64,000 nt of DNA from NCBI GenBank assembly GCA_964036045.1, contig OZ038378.1:195362001-195426000 (forward strand), written 5' to 3'. The position numbers were made by a program, and so were the translations under genes. Positions 35,081-47,159 of this stretch are shown here, one piece after another. The notes under the pieces are model-generated. The model searched no databases. It was not told the DNA's origin and saw only the letters and a program-made list of their open reading frames with translations. Position 1 is the stretch's first letter; each line of letters opens with the position of its first letter. The DNA is from Eutreptiella sp. 'Long Island Sound 2002'. Its lineage: Eukaryota; Protista; Euglenida.

Positions 35081-35426
35081 CCCCCCCCCCAAGCGTGTTC
35101 TACCGATACACACAAATAGCACCAACGAATTGTTGCATTTAGTGCCCACTGTCCACTTTTCAGCAACATCTAGTGTTAACATAATGTGTATGCAGACCGG
35201 GCTGACATTGCACCGCATGCCGCAACGTTCATGGGTGCAAAAAGTCACGGAAACAACACGACCCTGTTACCCATGTGGCACACCAAAGCCCATGAAGTGT
35301 GGTGTCAAGGAGGGTAATACATGCCCGCGCACCACAAGGTCCGGCAGGTGTCGGCAGGATAGCCTCAGGTATGGTACTGTGTGGTCATCTGAGATCGCCA
35401 CCATCCGAGCGTCAACCACTACTTAG

Positions 35427-37109
35427 TCACTCAGAGGACACTGTGACATCCACTGACAGCTCCAAATAGTAGCGCCCAGGGCGGTAATCCGCGTAACCAT
35501 CAGGGCGGTTGTTGTTGACGGAACAAGGCCCTGGAGGAGGGTTTGGCTGGTCCGTGACTGGCCGCCGCTGATCGTACAGCACCGAGTGTCCGTCCGGCGA
35601 GTACCATTTGTCATAATACCGGTTGGGATGCTGCTTGCTCGTGTTGAGCGTCCAGTTCTGCAGCCACACGTGCTCCGCGCCGAACTCGACATACGGCCCA
35701 TGGTCGCCGTAGAGCACGCGGCTGTAACCCACAGCCAACACGGAGCCGTCACTGGACCTGAAACTGGGGGGTCGCGTGCACCCGAACTCGGGCAACTTCC
35801 ACCGCGTCTCGAACGATTCCTTGTTCCGGCGGCGATTTGCGGTGTCGGCGGTCGACACCTGGCCGGGCGCTGGAGGCAAGGCATGCAGCAAAAAATCCTC
35901 TGGTTCAGCACACGCCGCCCCAGGCGGCCTAGCACCCGATCCTACCGGGCACGCCAACGCCAACGCCTGCCGCTTCCTGAGGTAGGCCGTGGCCTCGCGT
36001 TGCCGGAGTCCCACAAACTTGTTCGGCTCGGCAACCTGAACGTCGCTCAACGTGCCGGTATGGGGGTGTGGGTATCGCAACCGTATCAATGCCACAAACA
36101 AGCCTCGACAGCTCTTGTAACTCTTCGCTCCGGCGTCCGCGTTCGCGTTGCCGGCCCCGACGATGCTAAGGCCGTGCTGGTGCAACCGTGACCGCAGAAG
36201 GGCTTGGGTAACATCCGGGCATTCCAGGTCCAACGTTGTCAGATATCGCGCGGCATTACTCCTTGTCACCTCCACAACCACCCCTTCTACCTTGGCAGTC
36301 CGCCGTGCATCCTCCCCGCCAGATGCCCGCACTGGTGAGCCGTCGCGGACCGGTGTCCCGTCCCCCTCCGATCTGGCACTCACATGTTCGTGGGTGTCAT
36401 CCAGCGCAGGGAAGCGCACGCGCGTGCCTGGCGAACAACAACCTGATGGCAACCCTTGGATCACCACGCGGTACGTTGCGCACATGTGCCCTTGCAGGGC
36501 ATTGCGCTGCAAGGCCTCTAATGAGCTGTGGGTCTTCGCCACAAGCACAAGCCCCGATACGGAGCGACACAACCGATTCACAATCCTCGGTGAAGGCAAT
36601 GCGTCCGTCGCATTGGAGGCCGCCAAGCAATACGGGAGCGCTAAGGCCAAGGTGCAATGGCCTCGCATGTCAGCGACAACCCCCGAGTCCTTCCAAACGA
36701 CGGCCAGGTGGTTGTCCTCGCACAGCACACGTACCTCAAGCTTGTCCGTTCGCTCTGCAATGGCCCCCGAGTCGATGCGAAGCTGCACCACATCGCCTGC
36801 ACTCACAATCGTCGCGGAGTCCACCTTCACCACACCATTCACCTCCACATCGCCACGACGGATGGCCTCCTCACATCCTTTGGTTGAGGACAGATGGCCT
36901 CTAAAATGCTGTTTGCACACCTTTCGGAGTCGCAGATTGCCCTCCACAACTACATTGACATTAGCAAAGTCCAAGGGTCCTTCTGAGGGGTTTACCATGC
37001 CCTGTTGCTCGAGGGCAGGTGCAGGGTTTGTGTCACATGTGGGCCTGGAAGACAATGCATGTGTATCCTCTGACCCCCATCCGCAGGGCCATGAACAATA
37101 CTGAATCAC
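35427..37109 (-). CDS. Intronless S4 + RluA/RluD-family pseudouridine-synthase-like protein (probably catalytically altered) with unknown C-terminal domain; first in-frame ATG at 36998 gives 523 aa
   Basis: Single open frame. S4-like segment (EEAIRRGDVEVNG). RluA-order motifs: VLCEDNHLAVVWKDSG (cf. EDxxLxVVNKPxG), IVNRLCRSVSGLVLVAK (cf. VHRLDxxTSGLLLxAK), ATY, GLSIVG, LRYPHPHTG. Confidence 0.85.
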   Translation of the reverse strand: MIQYCSWPCGWGSEDTHALSSRPTCDTNPAPALEQQGMVNPSEGPLDFANVNVVVEGNLRLRKVCKQHFRGHLSSTKGCEEAIRRGDVEVNGVVKVDSATIVSAGDVVQLRIDSGAIAERTDKLEVRVLCEDNHLAVVWKDSGVVADMRGHCTLALALPYCLAASNATDALPSPRIVNRLCRSVSGLVLVAKTHSSLEALQRNALQGHMCATYRVVIQGLPSGCCSPGTRVRFPALDDTHEHVSARSEGDGTPVRDGSPVRASGGEDARRTAKVEGVVVEVTRSNAARYLTTLDLECPDVTQALLRSRLHQHGLSIVGAGNANADAGAKSYKSCRGLFVALIRLRYPHPHTGTLSDVQVAEPNKFVGLRQREATAYLRKRQALALACPVGSGARPPGAACAEPEDFLLHALPPAPGQVSTADTANRRRNKESFETRWKLPEFGCTRPPSFRSSDGSVLAVGYSRVLYGDHGPYVEFGAEHVWLQNWTLNTSKQHPNRYYDKWYSPDGHSVLYDQRRPVTDQPNPPPGPCSVNNNRPDGYADYRPGRYYLELSVDVTVSSE

Positions 37110-39249
37110 CCTCCCCCAAAAGGGGGGGGGATGTTTAGAAATTTCCTACGCACAAACAGCAAGGCCGGGGTTTTCGGGGGGCCCATGGTCTTGGGTACAT
37201 GGACCTGGCAGCTGCTATGTGGGACCCCATGGGCACTAGAGGACCCATATTGGCACCCAACAATGGTATTGCCCACCGCGGCGCAAACAGCCCAAAATGG
37301 CGCTGTTCTGCCCGAATGGGCACCACTAAGAGGCCTCGTTGGTGCTACATGGCTCCCCATGGGTTCATGTGCACCCCCATTTATCCGTGCCGCGCACTAC
37401 TTCTACGGTGGGTTTACCCAGAATCCATTGGCTTTTACCCCCTCCCAAAACGCAATCTCGGGAGAGCCAACCCTTGGGTACAAGACCTATGTAAACATCC
37501 CTCCTTCCCACAACATTGCACAAGCCAAAGGGAACTCGGTGAATTAATTAATTTGCTGCATATCAGCAATCTGTCCCCACGTGTGTGGGTGCCAAAAGAA
37601 AAAGCACAAGAATATAGCTAGCAACCTACTCTATCTGTGCCAGCAATACATCCCCACATGTGTGGATGCTGAAATAATTGCTACAATAATGGAGATGACA
37701 AGTATTGCACTCAAACACATGCCTCCAAACAGTGTCCCCAACACAGGGATGAATGCAAAATGGCTACATAACCACGAGATGAGGGGTCCCCGAAGCAGTA
37801 ATTGCGGGTGCTTGTGGGCCAAACCACCTATTCTCCGCGCCGCATGCGCACCACATCAGGTGCTCCCCGGGTCCCCGGCGGTTGTCAGTCACCCAAAAAT
37901 TGCAACCTTTCAGCCAACCCATTGTGGCCTGAAAAAGTCCTCACCGGTGTGGCCCCATAGGGGGGGGGGGGGGCAATCTCGGATACCCGGGGTTAGAACC
38001 CATGATCTCTGCAATTGGTTAGGGGTCCCACATAGAAGAAAAAAGTTCTCTTGGACTTGGGTCTGGATCCACACATCCTAGCCACAAAGGCCAACAAAGT
38101 TTTGCCCCCCCCCCCCACTACCACCATCAAAAGCGGTACCCAGGCACTAGGGGGAAGGGGTGGGACACGTCAAAATCGGAAATCATTAAGGGGACCATTT
38201 TGTCTCCCAAAATGACAACTTTACAGGGGGATGTTGGACATCCGATTTCGTACACTGGGTATGCCACATGAATAACCCCGCAAAAGGGGGAGGGGGGGGG
38301 GGGGCATGGCACCCACGCTTGCACTTTGGATGACAATGTCTCTTCGAGGTGATCCAATGGGTGGGCAAATGCAATGATGTTGCCATGATGAAATATCCAC
38401 CATGATCCTGACCTCATGCGAGACTTATTTCGTTCGATTCAAATTTGTTGCTTGTCCGCAATTGCACTACAAGCCAAACCAACACCGAATGGTGCCTTAA
38501 GGTTGCCGCACAGGTGTGGCTATCGAATGTTTCATGGGATCTTCCCCCTCCCAAAGCACTGCTCCCGTCCCCACCATACCAAGGTTAGCTCTCGCTACGT
38601 ATACGGGGTTCTCGGTACGTATACTGGGTTGGGACCTGTCACTCATGTGCCAAGGCCACAATCTTTTTTATAAATTGTCCGGTTCCATTAACAGTTGTGC
38701 AAGATTGTTCCGGCTCTTCAAACTCATTGTTTGTGCCAAGGCCACAATATCGGGCATGATCATGCTCGGGGGCACTCCCCGACTCTGCACCAGAACCCCC
38801 CAACCCCGATGACCCCCCATCACTATCTGTACTTTCCAAACCTCCCAAACCCAGACCATAGTGGGTCAATGACGTAATAAATGTAAGTTGTGTACAAAAA
38901 AATCGTCTAGTCGTGTAATTTTTTTTTGCGGTACATGCGTGTAATTTTTTTTTGCGGTAAGTCGTGTGAATTATAAAAAAAAATTGAATTTTTTTATTTT
39001 TGCGGTAAGGGCGTGTAATTTCTTTTTTGCGGTAAGTTGTGTAAATTATTAAAAAAAATTGAAAAATTGAAAGAAATGCAACCTTTGCAATACATGCGCA
39101 ATATGTACAGCCGCCGGTTCCATACGACACCCCATAGCGACCTTAACGATGGGACGCCGAGTCCACAAAGCACATAGTACTCTGCGTGGCCACCAATTAG
39201 TTGGGACTCGGCCAATATAACATAGTTTCACATGCTGTCATTGGCACTA

Positions 39250-39660
39250 GACTCAAAATCACGCCCAAGAAAAGAGTCCTAACAGGGCCATGGCCAACGC
39301 TAGTGCCACCATTATAGGCCACCAAGGCACTGGTGTGGGGCCAATATAACATAGTTTCACAGGGTGTCATGGGCACGAGACACAAAATTAGGCTCAAGAA
39401 AAGAGTCTTGACAGGGCCATGGCCAACATCCAGTGTGCCTGCACTGGGAACAAAATCAGGCTCAAGAAAAAGAGTCCTGACAGGGCCATGGCCTACGCTA
39501 GTGCCACCATTATAGGCCACCAAGGCACTGGTATGGGGCCAATATAATAGCAATCTTATACGCTCCGCCGTTGGTGCACCAAACAAGCGGAGGAAAATAG
39601 AGCCCACAAAACATGCACCTGCCACAAGTAGTTGCAAAATGCACGCTTGTAGATCAAGTC
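39250..39660 (+). repeat. Modular repeat (caggctcaagaaaagagtcctgacagggccatggccaac); related copy at about 42140-42320
   Basis: Three local copies plus a dispersed copy. Confidence 0.8.
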
Positions 39661-40127
39661 CATTTTTGTGTCGCTGGACCTGGGCTTTGCACGAGGATTG
39701 GGGTTAAACTAACAAGCGGCGTGCAACTCTGCTACTAGTTGTTTGGATAGGTCATTGATGAAAAGCTGGTCACGCTCTAGACAGCCAGATGCATCTGCCA
39801 TCTGGCACCTTGCGCCACTCTCCACGGATGAGGACCTTGGGACGGGTGTCCTCCTCTGTGGGAGTGGCCATGGAAGGTTGCGGCCTTGCCTCCAGGCTTT
39901 CCACGCTCTGCTCGGCGGAGGCCTCCTTGCCTTCGAGTGGGTGGGGGTGGCCTGAACACTCTCCTCCATAGCCGAAAGTGCACCTTCAACTTGGGTGCTA
40001 GGGGGGGGACTCAGGAGGGCCAGGAAGCTCGGTCATGCCCTCCACATCATCACCGGGCGCTTGAACAACCCGCACAACACGATCAGCATTAACAATGCTG
40101 AGCACATAGTCCACAAAACCGGCACCC

Positions 40128-42589: not shown

Positions 42590-43254
42590 GGTCTCAGCAC
42601 ATAACCATATGATCCTTGCCCCACATGTGTTGCATGACCCTACCTCACACCCTGCACAATTCAACATGAAGAAGAGCAATACTTTTTTTGAATCAAATAT
42701 AGTGATGCAGCGTTCGACCACCCGAATGTTCTATCGCCGGTGGCACAGCTGGAAACAAACTCCCTACTGCTGGTACAACCTGTGGAAGTGCACCCTGACA
42801 CGCTCCATAAGCTCACCCTTCCCCCCTCTCACTTGAATCGTGCTTGTACATCCTCAATCAAACTACGAAGAAACTTCATCCGGCTACCCTTGATGACGCT
42901 ACTCCCTACGTCAACACCCAACGATTCCTCCCACCCCCCTGGAATGACATGACGCATGGTGTGCAACAGCTGTGTGCACATCACGTTCATCAAACCCTGG
43001 ACGGCGGCGACCCGTGCCCCCCTGGTCGCTTGAACTTTCTTGCTTGTGGCACAAACCACAGCAAAAACATCGCAAAAAAAGGCTGCCGTCCACTTGAAGA
43101 GGAGGTGTGAAAGTGCATCGAACAAGCCCTGGGCCTTCTCCCTCCGCCCCAGGTCAGCCTCATGACTAATGTACTCGGGCAAGTGTTCCACAACAGCAGG
43201 CATATTCTCTAGCACAATATCAAGCTCGTGGAACATTGCTTCCACCCAACGCAC
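42590..43254 (-). pseudogene. hAT-type transposase fragment
   Basis: RWVEAMFHELDIVLENMPAVVEHL..KAQGLFDAL..FFCDVFAVVCATSKKVQ resembles the helical insertion region of hAT/ZNF862-like transposases. It lies inside the hAT-like TIRs, and its 5' part is replaced by the satellite. Confidence 0.6.
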
Positions 43255-43260
43255 ACCAGC

Positions 43261-45707
43261 GGCTACCTCACCCCTGCCGTATCGGGGAGCCCCACCGCCT
43301 CAGAGCGGGGGGCAAAATCAGAAGTAACCCACAAGTGGGCAAATTGGCTACCTCACCCCTGCCGTATCGGGGAGCCCCACCGCCTCAGAGCGGGGAGCAA
43401 AATCAGAAGTGGCCCACAAGTGGGCAAATTGGCTACCTCACCCCTGCCGTATCGGGGAGCCCCACCGCTTCAGAGCGGGGGGCAAAATCAGAAGTGGCCC
43501 ACAAGTGGGCAAATTGGCTACCTCACCCCTGCCGTATCGGGGAGCCCCACCGCCTCAGAGCGGGGAGCAAAATCAGAAGTGGCCCACAAGTGGGCAAATT
43601 GGCTACCTCACCCCTGCCGTATCGGGGAGCCCCACCGCCTCAGAGCGGGGAGCAAAATCAGAAGTGGCCCACAAGTGGGCAAATTGGCTACCTCACCCCG
43701 GCCGTATCGGGGAGCCCCACCGCCTCAGAGCGGGGGGCAAAATCAGAAGTGGCCCACAAGTGGGCAAATTGGCTACCTCACCCCTGCCGTATCGGGGAGC
43801 CCCACCGCCTCAGAGCGGGGAGCAAAATCAGAAGTGGCCCACAAGTGGGCAAATTGGCTACCTCACCCCTGCCGTATCGGGGAGCCCCACCGCCTCAGAG
43901 CGGGGAGCAAAATCAGAAGTGGCCCACAAGTGGGCAAATTGGCTACCTCACCCCTGCCGTATCGGGGAGCCCCACCGCCTCAGAGCGGGGAGCAAAATCA
44001 GAAGTGGCCCACAAGTGGGCAAATTGGCTACCTCACCCTTGCCGTATCGGGGAGCCCCACCGCCTCAGAGCGGGGAGCAAGATCAGAAGTGGCCCACAAG
44101 TGGGCAAATTGGCTACCTCACCCCTGCCGTATCGGGGAGCCCCACCGCCTCAGAGCGGGGAGCAAAATCAGAAGTGGCCCACAAGTGGGCAAATTGGCTA
44201 CCTCACCCCTGCCGTATCGGGGAGCCCCACCGCCTCAGAGCGGGGGGCAAAATCAGAAGTGGCCCACAAGTGGGCAAATTGGCTACCTCACCCCTGCCGT
44301 ATCGGGGAGCCCCACCGCCTCAGAGCGGGGGGCAAAATCAGAAGTGGCCCACAAGTGGGCAAATTGGCTACCTCACCCCTGCCGTATCGGGGAGCCCCAC
44401 CGCCTCAGAGCGGGGGGCAAAATCAGAAGTGGCCCACAAGTGGGCAAATTGGCTACCTCACCCCTGCCGTATCGGGGAGCCCCACCGCCTCAGAGCGGGG
44501 GGCAAAATCAGAAGTGGCCCACAAGTGGGCAAATTGGCTACCTCACCCCTGCCGTATCGGGGATCCCCACCGCCTCAGAGCGGGGAGCAAAATCAGAAGT
44601 GGCCCACAAGTGGGCAAATTGGCTACCTCACCCCTGCCGTATCGGGGAGCCCCACCGCTTCAGAGCGGGGGGCAAAATCAGAAGTGGCCCACAAGTGGGC
44701 AAATTGGCTACCTCACCCCTGCCGTATCGGGGAGCCCCACCGCCTCAGAGCGGGGGGCAAAATCAGAAGTGGCCCACAAGTGGGCAAATTGGCTACCTCA
44801 CCCCTGCCGTATCGGGGAGCCCCACCGCCTCAGAGCGGGGGGCAAAATCAGAAGTGGCCCACAAGTGGGCAAATTGGCTACCTCACCCCTGCCGTATCGG
44901 GGATCCCCACCGCCTCAGAGCGGGGGGCAAAATCAGAAGTGGCCCACAAGTGGGCAAATTGGCTACCTCACCCTTGCCGTATCGGGGAGCCCCACCGCCT
45001 CAGAGCGGGGAGCAAGATCAGAAGTGGCCCACAAGTGGGCAAATTGGCTACCTCACCCCTGCCGTATCGGGGAGCCCCACCGCCTCAGAGCGGGGAGCAA
45101 AATCAGAAGTGGCCCACAAGTGGGCAAATTGGCTACCTCACCCCTGCCGTATCGGGGAGCCCCACCGCCTCAGAGCGGGGGGCAAAATCAGAAGTGGCCC
45201 ACAAGTGGGCAAATTGGCTACCTCACCCCTGCCGTATCAGGGAGCCCCACCGCCTCAGAGCGGGGGGCAAAATCAGAAGTGGCCCACAAGTGGGCAAATT
45301 GGCTACCTCACCCCTGCCGTATCGGGGAGCCCCACCGCCTCAGAGCGGGGGGCAAAATCAGAAGTGGCCCACAAGTGGGCAAATTGGCTACCTCACCCCT
45401 GCCGTATCGGGGAGCCCCACCGCCTCAGAGCGGGGGGCAAAATCAGAAGTGGCCCACAAGTGGGCAAATTGGCTACCTCACCCCTGCCGTATCGGGGATC
45501 CCCACCGCCTCAGAGCGGGGAGCAAAATCAGAAGTGGCCCACAAGTGGGCAAATTGGCTACCTCACCCCTGCCGTATCGGGGAGCCCCACCGCTTCAGAG
45601 CGGGGGGCAAAATCAGAAGTGGCCCACAAGTGGGCAAATTGGCTACCTCACCCCTGCCGTATCGGGGAGCCCCACCGCCTCAGAGCGGGGGGCAAAATCA
45701 GAAGTGG
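43261..45707 (+). repeat. Homogeneous 85-bp tandem satellite, about 29 copies
   Basis: Unit ggctacctcacccctgccgtatcggggagccccaccgcctcagagcggggrgcaaaatcagaagtggcccacaagtgggcaaatt, with only occasional single-base variants. Confidence 0.98.
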
Positions 45708-47159
45708 TGCCCAAAAGAGGGCGGCGGGGGGGGTAGACATGGCCCGCGTTCGGCCGGGGGAAAAAGGCCTCTAGGGGCTGTCCTTAAGGGCTGTCCTTAA
45801 CAAAAAAAAAAAATCTCGTCCCTTAAGGACAGCCCTGGGTAATGCTCTAGAACAAAAAATTCCTGACCACGGATAACCACCTTTGGACAGACCTCATCTT
45901 CTAAAAGCGGGTTGTCAACCGCGCACCGCTCACCCAACGCGAATGCCAATACAATGCATGCCGGTGTGGCAGTAAATTGCACTCTCCATTTGCGCAATGC
46001 CACACATATCTCCGATGGACACAAAACGGAAGGGCATGTAGGGCACGCTGATAAACTCCACATTCAGGGCGGGCTATGTGGACGGTGTCATCGCAAAAAA
46101 AAGCACGACGAACGGCTGGGTGGGTAATAGGGTGTAGCATACATCCGTGCCATTGCCCCACTCGGTGTGGTCTCCATAGGGGGGGCGTGCGTAGAATTGC
46201 GATAGTGCAAAGTTGCCTGTGCAATCCCACGCAACAACCACAATCTATCTTGGGGAAGTTGCACGTTGCCGTTGACAACACGCTTGGACAAAAGGCAATG
46301 CAGCATCAGAAGGCAGGCGAAATGGCAGCCCACACCGTCCTTTTGACATAGGAAGGTGGAGTAGAGGGGGCGATAGCAAAAGCTACATTGCCAAACTCAC
46401 CCAAAAACCTATCCCACTTCTTCTGCGGCCTTGGCTCAATGCCTTCTTGTTCGGCAATGAGGTTGACTATGGCCAACTCCTCAATGTTTGCACCCGCTAT
46501 GTACAAATCTGTTAGACGGCTGATCGAACACGGAGCATAAGAAAGTGTGCATTGGGGAAACCAACAACAAGCGCAGCAAAACATAACACACAACATACAA
46601 TGGCTGGAAGAGAGCCGAGCCGCGGGCCTGAAGTAACCCACAAAAAGTCCAATGAGTGCAGCACCCCACAATAGATGGCATACATTTTGAATGTCGGTCC
46701 CCCACATGCATTGCACCTGGGCCTGTGTCTGTCACTCTTTACCCATGAATGATGAGTAAGCTCCTTCATCAGATCAAGGGCCGTATGTCACAAACAACCA
46801 AGCAATAAAAGTACACTACATGCGTATTCTAAGGGTGTCATCTGTGCCCACAAGACTCATTGTGGCCGCGGCGGGTGGGAACCCGCAAGCGCATAGTGCA
46901 AGGTTGCACAGGGGCGCGATGTGGGAAGGCACAAGGGCACAGTGTAACGGGCACAACGTAGGGTTGTGGTGCTAGGCCACACAGGGATGCAGCTTGCGAT
47001 GGCGCTCCAGCGCACAGCAGGGTCGCGCAGGGGCACAATATTAAATCGTGTTGGGCCGTACTGTGGGACTGATTTATTCATGCATACCTCGGTGCCTTCC
47101 GCAGAGTCTTACTTGGTGCACACTAATGCAAACACCGAGAGCAGAAGGAAAAGGGGGGG

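Follow-up and report, generated by a model that had tools for sequence, protein, structure and literature searches.

A gene in the genome of the euglenid Eutreptiella sp. 'Long Island Sound 2002' encodes a pseudouridine synthase fold of the RluA/RluD type in which the catalytic aspartate is replaced by cysteine and to which a conserved domain, predicted to be beta-tent-like, is fused. The gene lies on the minus strand of a 64,000-nucleotide stretch of contig OZ038378.1 (GenBank assembly GCA_964036045.1, positions 195,362,001 to 195,426,000). We call this whole stretch the window, and positions are those of the window unless another contig is named. We believe that the protein belongs to the RluA/RluD family, is catalytically dead and serves as an RNA- or ribosome-binding adaptor, and we put the probability of this reading at about 0.6. 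An earlier, sequence-only reading of the same DNA had proposed a pseudoenzyme repurposed for RNA binding; it had missed the fused C-terminal domain, a paralogue elsewhere in the genome, and the loss of the Asp across a clade. The gene and the parts of its product are as follows:

35427 to 36998, minus strand: coding sequence, probably complete, of 523 codons and a TGA stop (35427-35429), one exon
36771 to 36968, minus strand: S4-like RNA-binding domain (Pfam S4, 16.7 bits against a cut-off of 22.8; confident in the AlphaFold (AF2) model)
35940 to 36743, minus strand: pseudouridine synthase fold of the RluA/RluD type, with the helical tail of the subfamily, EPNKFVGLRQRE, at its end
36681 to 36701, minus strand: motif I, VVWKDSG, with Asp in place of the family Pro (consensus KPxG)
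36552 to 36584, minus strand: motif II, IVNRLCRSVSG, whose Cys is encoded by TGT (36567-36569); it keeps the Arg of HRLD, and the DNA runs show no differences here
36471 to 36473, minus strand: motif IIa Tyr (ATYRVV), retained by alignment
36318 to 36386, minus strand: probably disordered insertion within the synthase fold (model residues 205-227, with a predicted local distance difference test score, pLDDT, below 50)
36192 to 36194, minus strand: motif III Arg (LLRSRLH), retained, with the His and Gln of HQIR lost (context ALLRSRLHQHG)
35430 to 35900, minus strand: conserved C-terminal domain of 157 residues, with motifs STADTxNR, YGDHGPYxEF, DQPNPPPG and NNRPDGYADY

The N-terminal two thirds of the protein has the fold of an RluA-family synthase. 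An AF2 model of residues 1-353, built from an alignment of 22 sequences (A1), had a pLDDT of 83.6 with one disordered insertion, and shows a synthase fold behind an N-terminal S4 domain, as in RluC and RluD. In Foldseek searches the model matched full-length E. coli RluD (2ist, 1.5e-17), RluA (2i82, 5e-14) and RluC (1v9k, 1e-12), human RPUSD4 (1e-10) and RPUSD1, and chains of trypanosomatid mt-LAF3 (7aoi_XP, 6yxx_EC and 7am2_BZ; E values from 8e-14, for T. brucei, to 2e-11). The S4 domain lies in the confidently modelled region and the alignment to 2ist takes in the whole model, in agreement with the sequence-only reading, which had described an intact frame with its S4 domain kept. Profile scores fell below the curated thresholds for both TIGR00005 (66.3 bits against a cut-off of 192.7) and PF00849 (23.6 bits against 26.8), yet homology to the RluA family is clear (E value 2.7e-18).

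The residue on which catalysis depends is missing. The Asp of HRLD is essential in RluA-family enzymes, and the window protein has NRLC in its place. The Cys stands opposite the Asp of IVHRLDKETSG (11wx) and of VHRLDRDTSG (RluC, 1xpi and 1v9k) in phmmer alignments, as had been read from the sequence, and its codon, TGT, is two substitutions away from GAT or GAC. The reported drift of motif I from KP to KD also held up. Motif III had been described as having no HQIRxH; the His and Gln are indeed gone, but the Arg is kept. By alignment, all three pocket residues other than the Asp are present (the motif II Arg, the motif IIa Tyr and the motif III Arg). We infer that synthase activity has been lost from this protein.

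The Cys codon is not a read error. Contigs from two DNA runs (X4 and X5) span 35091-37361 with 0 differences from the window, and a third run (X6) needs two contigs to span the same stretch, of which the one covering 35163-36009 differs by one letter. The identical protein is encoded by a second assembly. Because the three DNA runs and the second assembly agree at the TGT codon, a read error, already considered unlikely from the codon distance, does not explain the Cys. The runs give full coverage here and continuously cover intergenic DNA and repeats too; they and the second assembly are probably products of the genome project itself.

The coding sequence extends well beyond the synthase fold. 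The sole long frame at the locus is 35427 to 37109 on the minus strand (560 codons, counted from an artificial GTG). Its first ATG, at 36998, is where the sequence-only reading had placed the upper end of the gene. Homologues and the mRNA of the paralogue begin at the equivalent point, and we therefore took 36998-35427 as the coding sequence. The other end of the gene had been put at 35810; instead, the frame continues for another 128 codons to its stop and encodes a conserved domain. Only 8 open frames of at least 250 residues are found in the 64-kb window, several of them mutually overlapping, so that this one is not open by chance.

Loss of the Asp is, as far as the sequences tell, a clade-wide trait and not private to the window gene. 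The nearest relatives of the S4 and synthase part are nine early-fungal proteins (from genera that include Neocallimastix, Blyttiomyces, Borealophlyctis, Phascolomyces, Geosiphon and Dispira), three environmental eukaryote-like proteins, and a set of short proteins with HRLD and HQxR still in place. A C-terminal helix, EPxKFxxLRxRE, is common to all of them. A maximum-likelihood tree separated an HRLD-bearing set from a degenerate group with support of 100/100; the degenerate group is made up of the window protein, its paralogue, the nine early-fungal proteins and the three environmental proteins. Inside it, the window protein and the paralogue were joined at 98/90, beside P0070 and P0117. The HRLD-bearing set includes a protein from the same Eutreptiella genome (L003, C20:5696675-5697430), with VHRLD, HQLRRH and a PPKF tail within a 786-codon open frame, which is likely the active counterpart in this genome.

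Within the degenerate group, the position of the Asp is occupied by Asp, Gln or Glu (three proteins each), Pro (two), Ser (the paralogue and P0070) and Cys (the window protein). The SGLVLVAKT strand that follows motif II stays conserved. Since the position varies across the group, Cys is one of many tolerated residues. To judge from this pattern, the position is no longer under constraint and Cys is one result of that; the Cys itself is no evidence for thiol chemistry. The two-step distance between the Cys and Asp codons simply reflects age; Cys and Ser codons can be one base apart.

The paralogue is clearly expressed, and its mRNA is trans-spliced. We found it by searching the whole 2.28-Gb assembly, at C8:24847134-24863351 (loci L006-L008). 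A JGI transcript contig of 2207 nt (L017) maps there as 14 exons over 16 kb, with 13 of the 14 pieces 98-100% identical to the genome and the remaining piece, across a run of Ns, 93% identical. Our study of the paralogue used this natural mRNA contig and the single exons. In the transcript, a gap of 10 Ns shifts the called frame. The ten bases at the start of the transcript, ATTTTTTTTC, are missing from the genome and are the tail of the euglenid spliced leader. The open frame begins MTMSHEVKEIAV, about ten residues ahead of the S4 domain, and the architecture is that of the window protein: S4 domain, synthase fold, linker and C-terminal domain. Motif II of the paralogue is RVVNALSRGMSGLVLAAKT (NALSR), in which Ser holds the Asp position and the Arg is gone too. 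Where the window protein has its disordered insertion, the paralogue has a longer, unrelated one.

The duplication is old, and both copies have been conserved since. In a tree of the C-terminal domain, the C8 paralogue grouped with a protein from Euglena longa (P0002) with support of 100/93; the duplication therefore predates the split between Eutreptiella and E. longa. We rejected P0002 as an orthologue of the window protein, as this fragment begins past motif II and has the paralogue as its orthologue. The window protein and the paralogue are 45% identical over 340 aligned residues and are about equally far from the outgroups (29.4% and 29.3% identity, respectively), and each retains 34 of 37 family-conserved positions. 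Of the 18 consensus positions of the C-terminal domain, 17 are kept in the window protein and 15 each in the paralogue and P0002, and in the domain tree the window copy is on a shorter branch than the paralogue. The proportions of nonsynonymous (pN) and synonymous (pS) differences between the two genes, two values each, were 0.39 and 0.29 for pN and 0.86 and 0.75 for pS; pS is saturated at this distance, so the ratio of nonsynonymous to synonymous rates reduces to the statement that pN is far below pS. GC content at third codon positions was higher in frame (0.70) than out of frame (0.64 and 0.49).

A frame of 523 codons that stays open across such divergence excludes long-term neutrality, although not a recent silencing, and the branch lengths suggest purifying selection on the window lineage itself. 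Neutral evolution, raised in the sequence-only reading as what would tell against it, does not fit with pN far below pS against the paralogue or with conservation equal to that of an expressed gene. A retained fold, a lost catalytic Asp and apparent purifying selection together indicate a pseudoenzyme. With 34 of the 37 positions kept, pN well under pS and an old duplication, repurposing for RNA binding, as originally proposed, is the best interpretation.

The C-terminal domain fused to the synthase fold is widespread and probably has a beta-tent-like fold. An exhaustive protein search with the window protein gave 340 library matches at E values of 1e-10 or below, the majority to this domain, which was found standing alone and within proteins of up to 4336 residues. 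In an alignment of the family (A2), G65, D66, G68, Y70, E72, Q111, V115, P121, G135, Y136, Y139 and Y145 are invariant. The AlphaFold model of the domain had a pLDDT of 96.8. A Pfam search gave no family for it, Foldseek against the PDB gave nothing at E values of 0.001 or below (best about 0.1), and shape and feature searches of the ESM Atlas gave no usable match. In a VIA structural search, beta-tent proteins took up almost every one of the top 27 rows: Mis18/Yippee (Z scores of 7.9 and 7.5), cereblon CULT (6.8), DUF427 (6.7), MsrB1 (6.6), YPEL5 (6.1) and the C-terminal domains of RIG-I, MDA5 and LGP2 (5.4-4.8), with Mss4 and TCTP listed too; according to the tool, Z scores below 8 may mean merely a common arrangement of structure.

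Based on these middling Z scores, we consider the model of the domain to be beta-tent-like, without the zinc cysteines. It aligns with the known beta-tent domains (Mis18/Yippee, CULT, MsrB, DUF427 and the RIG-I C-terminal domain) over about 90 residues (Z scores 7.9-5.0) but at only 6-15% sequence identity, its motifs (YGDHGPY, NPPPG, NNR and GYADY) resemble none of theirs, and alignment A2 has no conserved Cys pairs, i.e., lacks the zinc-binding CxxC site that is usual in this fold of two four-stranded sheets set as a tent. Some beta-tent members bind uridine or the ends of RNAs, which is compatible with an RNA context and is no proof of one. The domain is carried by four loci of the Eutreptiella genome. 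Copies lacking a synthase fold lie at C19:38038817-38039239 (L010) and C24:14783910-14788175 (L012 and L013), and an environmental standalone homologue (L016) has an N-terminus that resembles a mitochondrial presequence. The closest outside relative of the domain (P0007) was ruled out as an orthologue of the fusion; it comes from a 902-nt contig without a synthase domain.

Other members of the degenerate group carry unrelated effector domains. The nine early-fungal proteins (P0056, P0093, P0097, P0133, P0137, P0141, P0147, P0148 and P0152) and P0070 join S4 and an RluA-like fold with degenerate motif II to a PrmC/HemK release-factor glutamine methyltransferase, recognized by TIGR03534 (up to 177 bits) and hemK_fam (131 bits, above its cut-off). 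Databases label these fusion proteins as methyltransferases only. P0117, a JGI metagenome protein of 795 residues, joins DUF4326 and an AlkB-like 2OG-Fe(II) oxygenase to S4 and a dead synthase fold. In the window protein, the paralogue and P0002 of E. longa, the partner is the beta-tent-like domain. Our literature search found no paper describing a fusion of a synthase with HemK and none on euglenid pseudouridine synthase pseudoenzymes.

Because unrelated effectors are attached to members of the degenerate group, we read the S4 domain and synthase fold as a module for docking on, or targeting to, RNA. This module would persist as an RNA-binding unit. Since relatives are joined to PrmC/HemK and the fold is RluD-like, it would most likely recognize a structured RNA belonging to the translation apparatus. 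With the pocket Arg, Tyr and Arg in place it may still hold a flipped-out base, and with Cys for the essential Asp it should be unable to isomerize uridine. It would thereby bring the fused, strongly conserved beta-tent-like domain to the RNA, and that domain would be the more likely active or ligand-binding part. A more speculative extension, which we think rather unlikely as it stands, is that S4 plus dead synthase is an ancient eukaryotic 'address label' for a site on the translation apparatus, repeatedly joined to different effectors, and that the beta-tent-like domain, which occurs widely among eukaryotes and has invariant D, H, E, Q, N, R and Y residues, is an undescribed enzyme or nucleoside binder acting on rRNA or tRNA.

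Several observations weigh against an RNA-binding adaptor. Three members of the degenerate group retain the Asp, so that not all of the clade is dead. In the collections searched there was no orthologue with motif II: none appeared in word-index protein searches with the whole protein, the S4 and synthase part or a 121-residue piece around motif II, none in an exhaustive representative search, and none in back-translated or exact 34-mer scans of metagenome contigs. The fold and the fusions of distant relatives are the grounds on which RNA binding, an RNA target and a link to translation are proposed. The sole RNA-library support for the window copy is a 270-nt contig (35451-35720, no mismatches) from an estuary metatranscriptome (X1), and the stretch was found in no RNA run of this organism. 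Furthermore, the window copy has no introns, compared to 13 in the paralogue, and therefore is probably an old retrocopy; this makes a silent copy more likely from the outset.

Such a silent copy, a processed gene that lost its expression or function too recently to have gained a stop codon, is quite improbable in our view. Its single exon against the paralogue's 14 would fit, as would the unusual change of Pro to Asp in motif I and the transcript-derived protein that is on record for the mRNA of the paralogue and not for the window copy; an exact-product look-up of the ATG-started window protein found nothing. However, the frame is intact although the protein has diverged from that of the paralogue by about 55%, the synthase part is as conserved as in the expressed paralogue and the C-terminal domain more so, the third-position GC content is highest in frame, the 3' end of the gene showed neither a poly(A) tract nor a target duplication, and the exact contig from the RNA library falls within the coding sequence. 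An active enzyme, in which the Cys would act as the nucleophile as in C6-attacking enzymes, to make pseudouridine or to drive another reaction on a flipped-out pyrimidine, is very unlikely. The sequence-only reading had allowed for a different, Cys-based chemistry, and for a dead member an unusual number of pocket residues is left (the paralogue has lost even the motif II Arg), but the Cys occurs in one sequence only, with Ser in the paralogue and P0070 and Gln, Glu or Pro in others, and neither a second conserved Cys nor a cofactor motif was seen. Asp-to-Cys mutants of E. coli pseudouridine synthases are reportedly inactive.

The protein is also unlikely to be an organellar (mitochondrial or plastid) ribosome assembly factor, a euglenid counterpart of mt-LAF3/mt-LAF4 or RPUSD3, as the sequence-only reading had suggested by way of example. 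PrmC-type enzymes in eukaryotes are typically mitochondrial, and the fungal relatives carry a PrmC/HemK domain. Our model matched mt-LAF3 chains of T. brucei and Leishmania, and euglenozoan mitoribosome assembly makes use of synthases that are dead or whose activity is dispensable (PMC7957421, PMC7703582). But the bacterial RluD and RluA structures matched equally well or better, and mt-LAF3 retains the Asp (HNLD). In addition, the spliced-leader-capped mRNA of the paralogue starts its frame close to the S4 domain, and, judged by eye, there is no N-terminal extension or organellar presequence in either protein. Both N-termini are acidic (MVNPSEGPLDF in the window protein), and neither resembles a mitochondrial presequence or the long bipartite plastid signal of euglenids.

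The adaptor reading has precedents among pseudouridine synthases. Human RPUSD3, a protein of mitochondrial RNA granules, has no catalytic Asp, is regarded as a pseudoenzyme, and is needed for mitochondrial 16S rRNA (PMC12710931). It resembles the window protein in having an RluA-type fold, having lost the Asp (RASG, with Gly) and being kept under selection, and it has an RNA or ribosome role without catalysis, as we propose for the window protein (PMC12710931; bioRxiv 10.1101/2023.02.23.529727). It differs in being mitochondrial and in having no beta-tent fusion, whereas the window protein lacks a presequence, keeps the Arg of HRLD, has Cys and not Gly, and belongs to another subfamily, the one with the EPxKFxxLRxRE tail. 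In T. brucei, mt-LAF3 with D211A still complements (bioRxiv 10.1101/2023.02.23.529727). Kinetoplastid mt-LAF4 is an inactive, TruD-like placeholder (PMC7957421, PMC7703582). These RluD-like and TruD-like factors are euglenozoan synthase folds that serve as RNA scaffolds, and the Asp of mt-LAF3 is dispensable. They differ from the window protein in being mitochondrial, seen on pre-LSU (large-subunit) particles, and without a beta-tent domain, and mt-LAF3 shows the opposite pattern in motif II, with the Asp kept and the Arg lost.

E. coli RluD and RluC share with the window protein the two-domain layout, the fold, the order of the motifs, the Tyr and the motif III Arg, and differ from it in having HRLD and the His and Gln of HQIR and in lacking the disordered insertion and the C-terminal domain. 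The early-fungal fusions (e.g., Neocallimastix ORY61813.1 and Phascolomyces KAI9244186.1) share the tail motif, the degenerate motif II and the same group in the tree; their effector is a release-factor-type glutamine methyltransferase and not a beta-tent domain. RluA-type pseudoenzymes are thus already known from RPUSD3, and what is new here is the combination with a beta-tent-like domain.

Some features lie around the gene. The sequence shows a pyrimidine tract followed by AG 46 nt upstream of the ATG, a putative acceptor for the spliced leader or for 3' splicing, the paralogue's mRNA being trans-spliced:

37045 to 37055, minus strand: pyrimidine tract and AG (ttgtcttccAG)

High-copy repeats with many internal joints flank the gene at 37149-37542 and 38725-39700, where summed contig depth runs from thousands to hundreds of thousands, compared to about 30 over the gene. 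Further away, at 43228-45800, the DNA is GC-rich (61%) and all three plus-strand frames are open for about 850 codons; the sole match there is a weak, low-complexity one to Gag_p12, and this is probably a proline-rich or simple-sequence region and not three genes. The estuary metatranscriptome also contains an exact short contig at 33800-33944, which suggests estuarine water as a habitat of the organism or of a very close strain.

The reuse of dead RNA-modifying enzymes as chaperones or scaffolds of RNA is a theme now emerging, with RPUSD3, mt-LAF3 and mt-LAF4, and inactive methyltransferases in mitoribosome assembly as examples. The gene described here would be a further case and not an isolated one, as it belongs to a eukaryotic clade, reaching from euglenids to early fungi, in which a decayed active site goes together with varied effectors. 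For the idea of an unusual Cys active site the outcome is deflationary, and the added interest lies in the clade-wide pattern of effector fusions and in the orphan beta-tent-like domain. The euglenid fusion gives this widespread YGDHGPY/NPPPG domain its first functional context, which would be RNA, and two questions become testable: which RNA site the S4 and synthase module recognizes, and what the beta-tent-like domain does.

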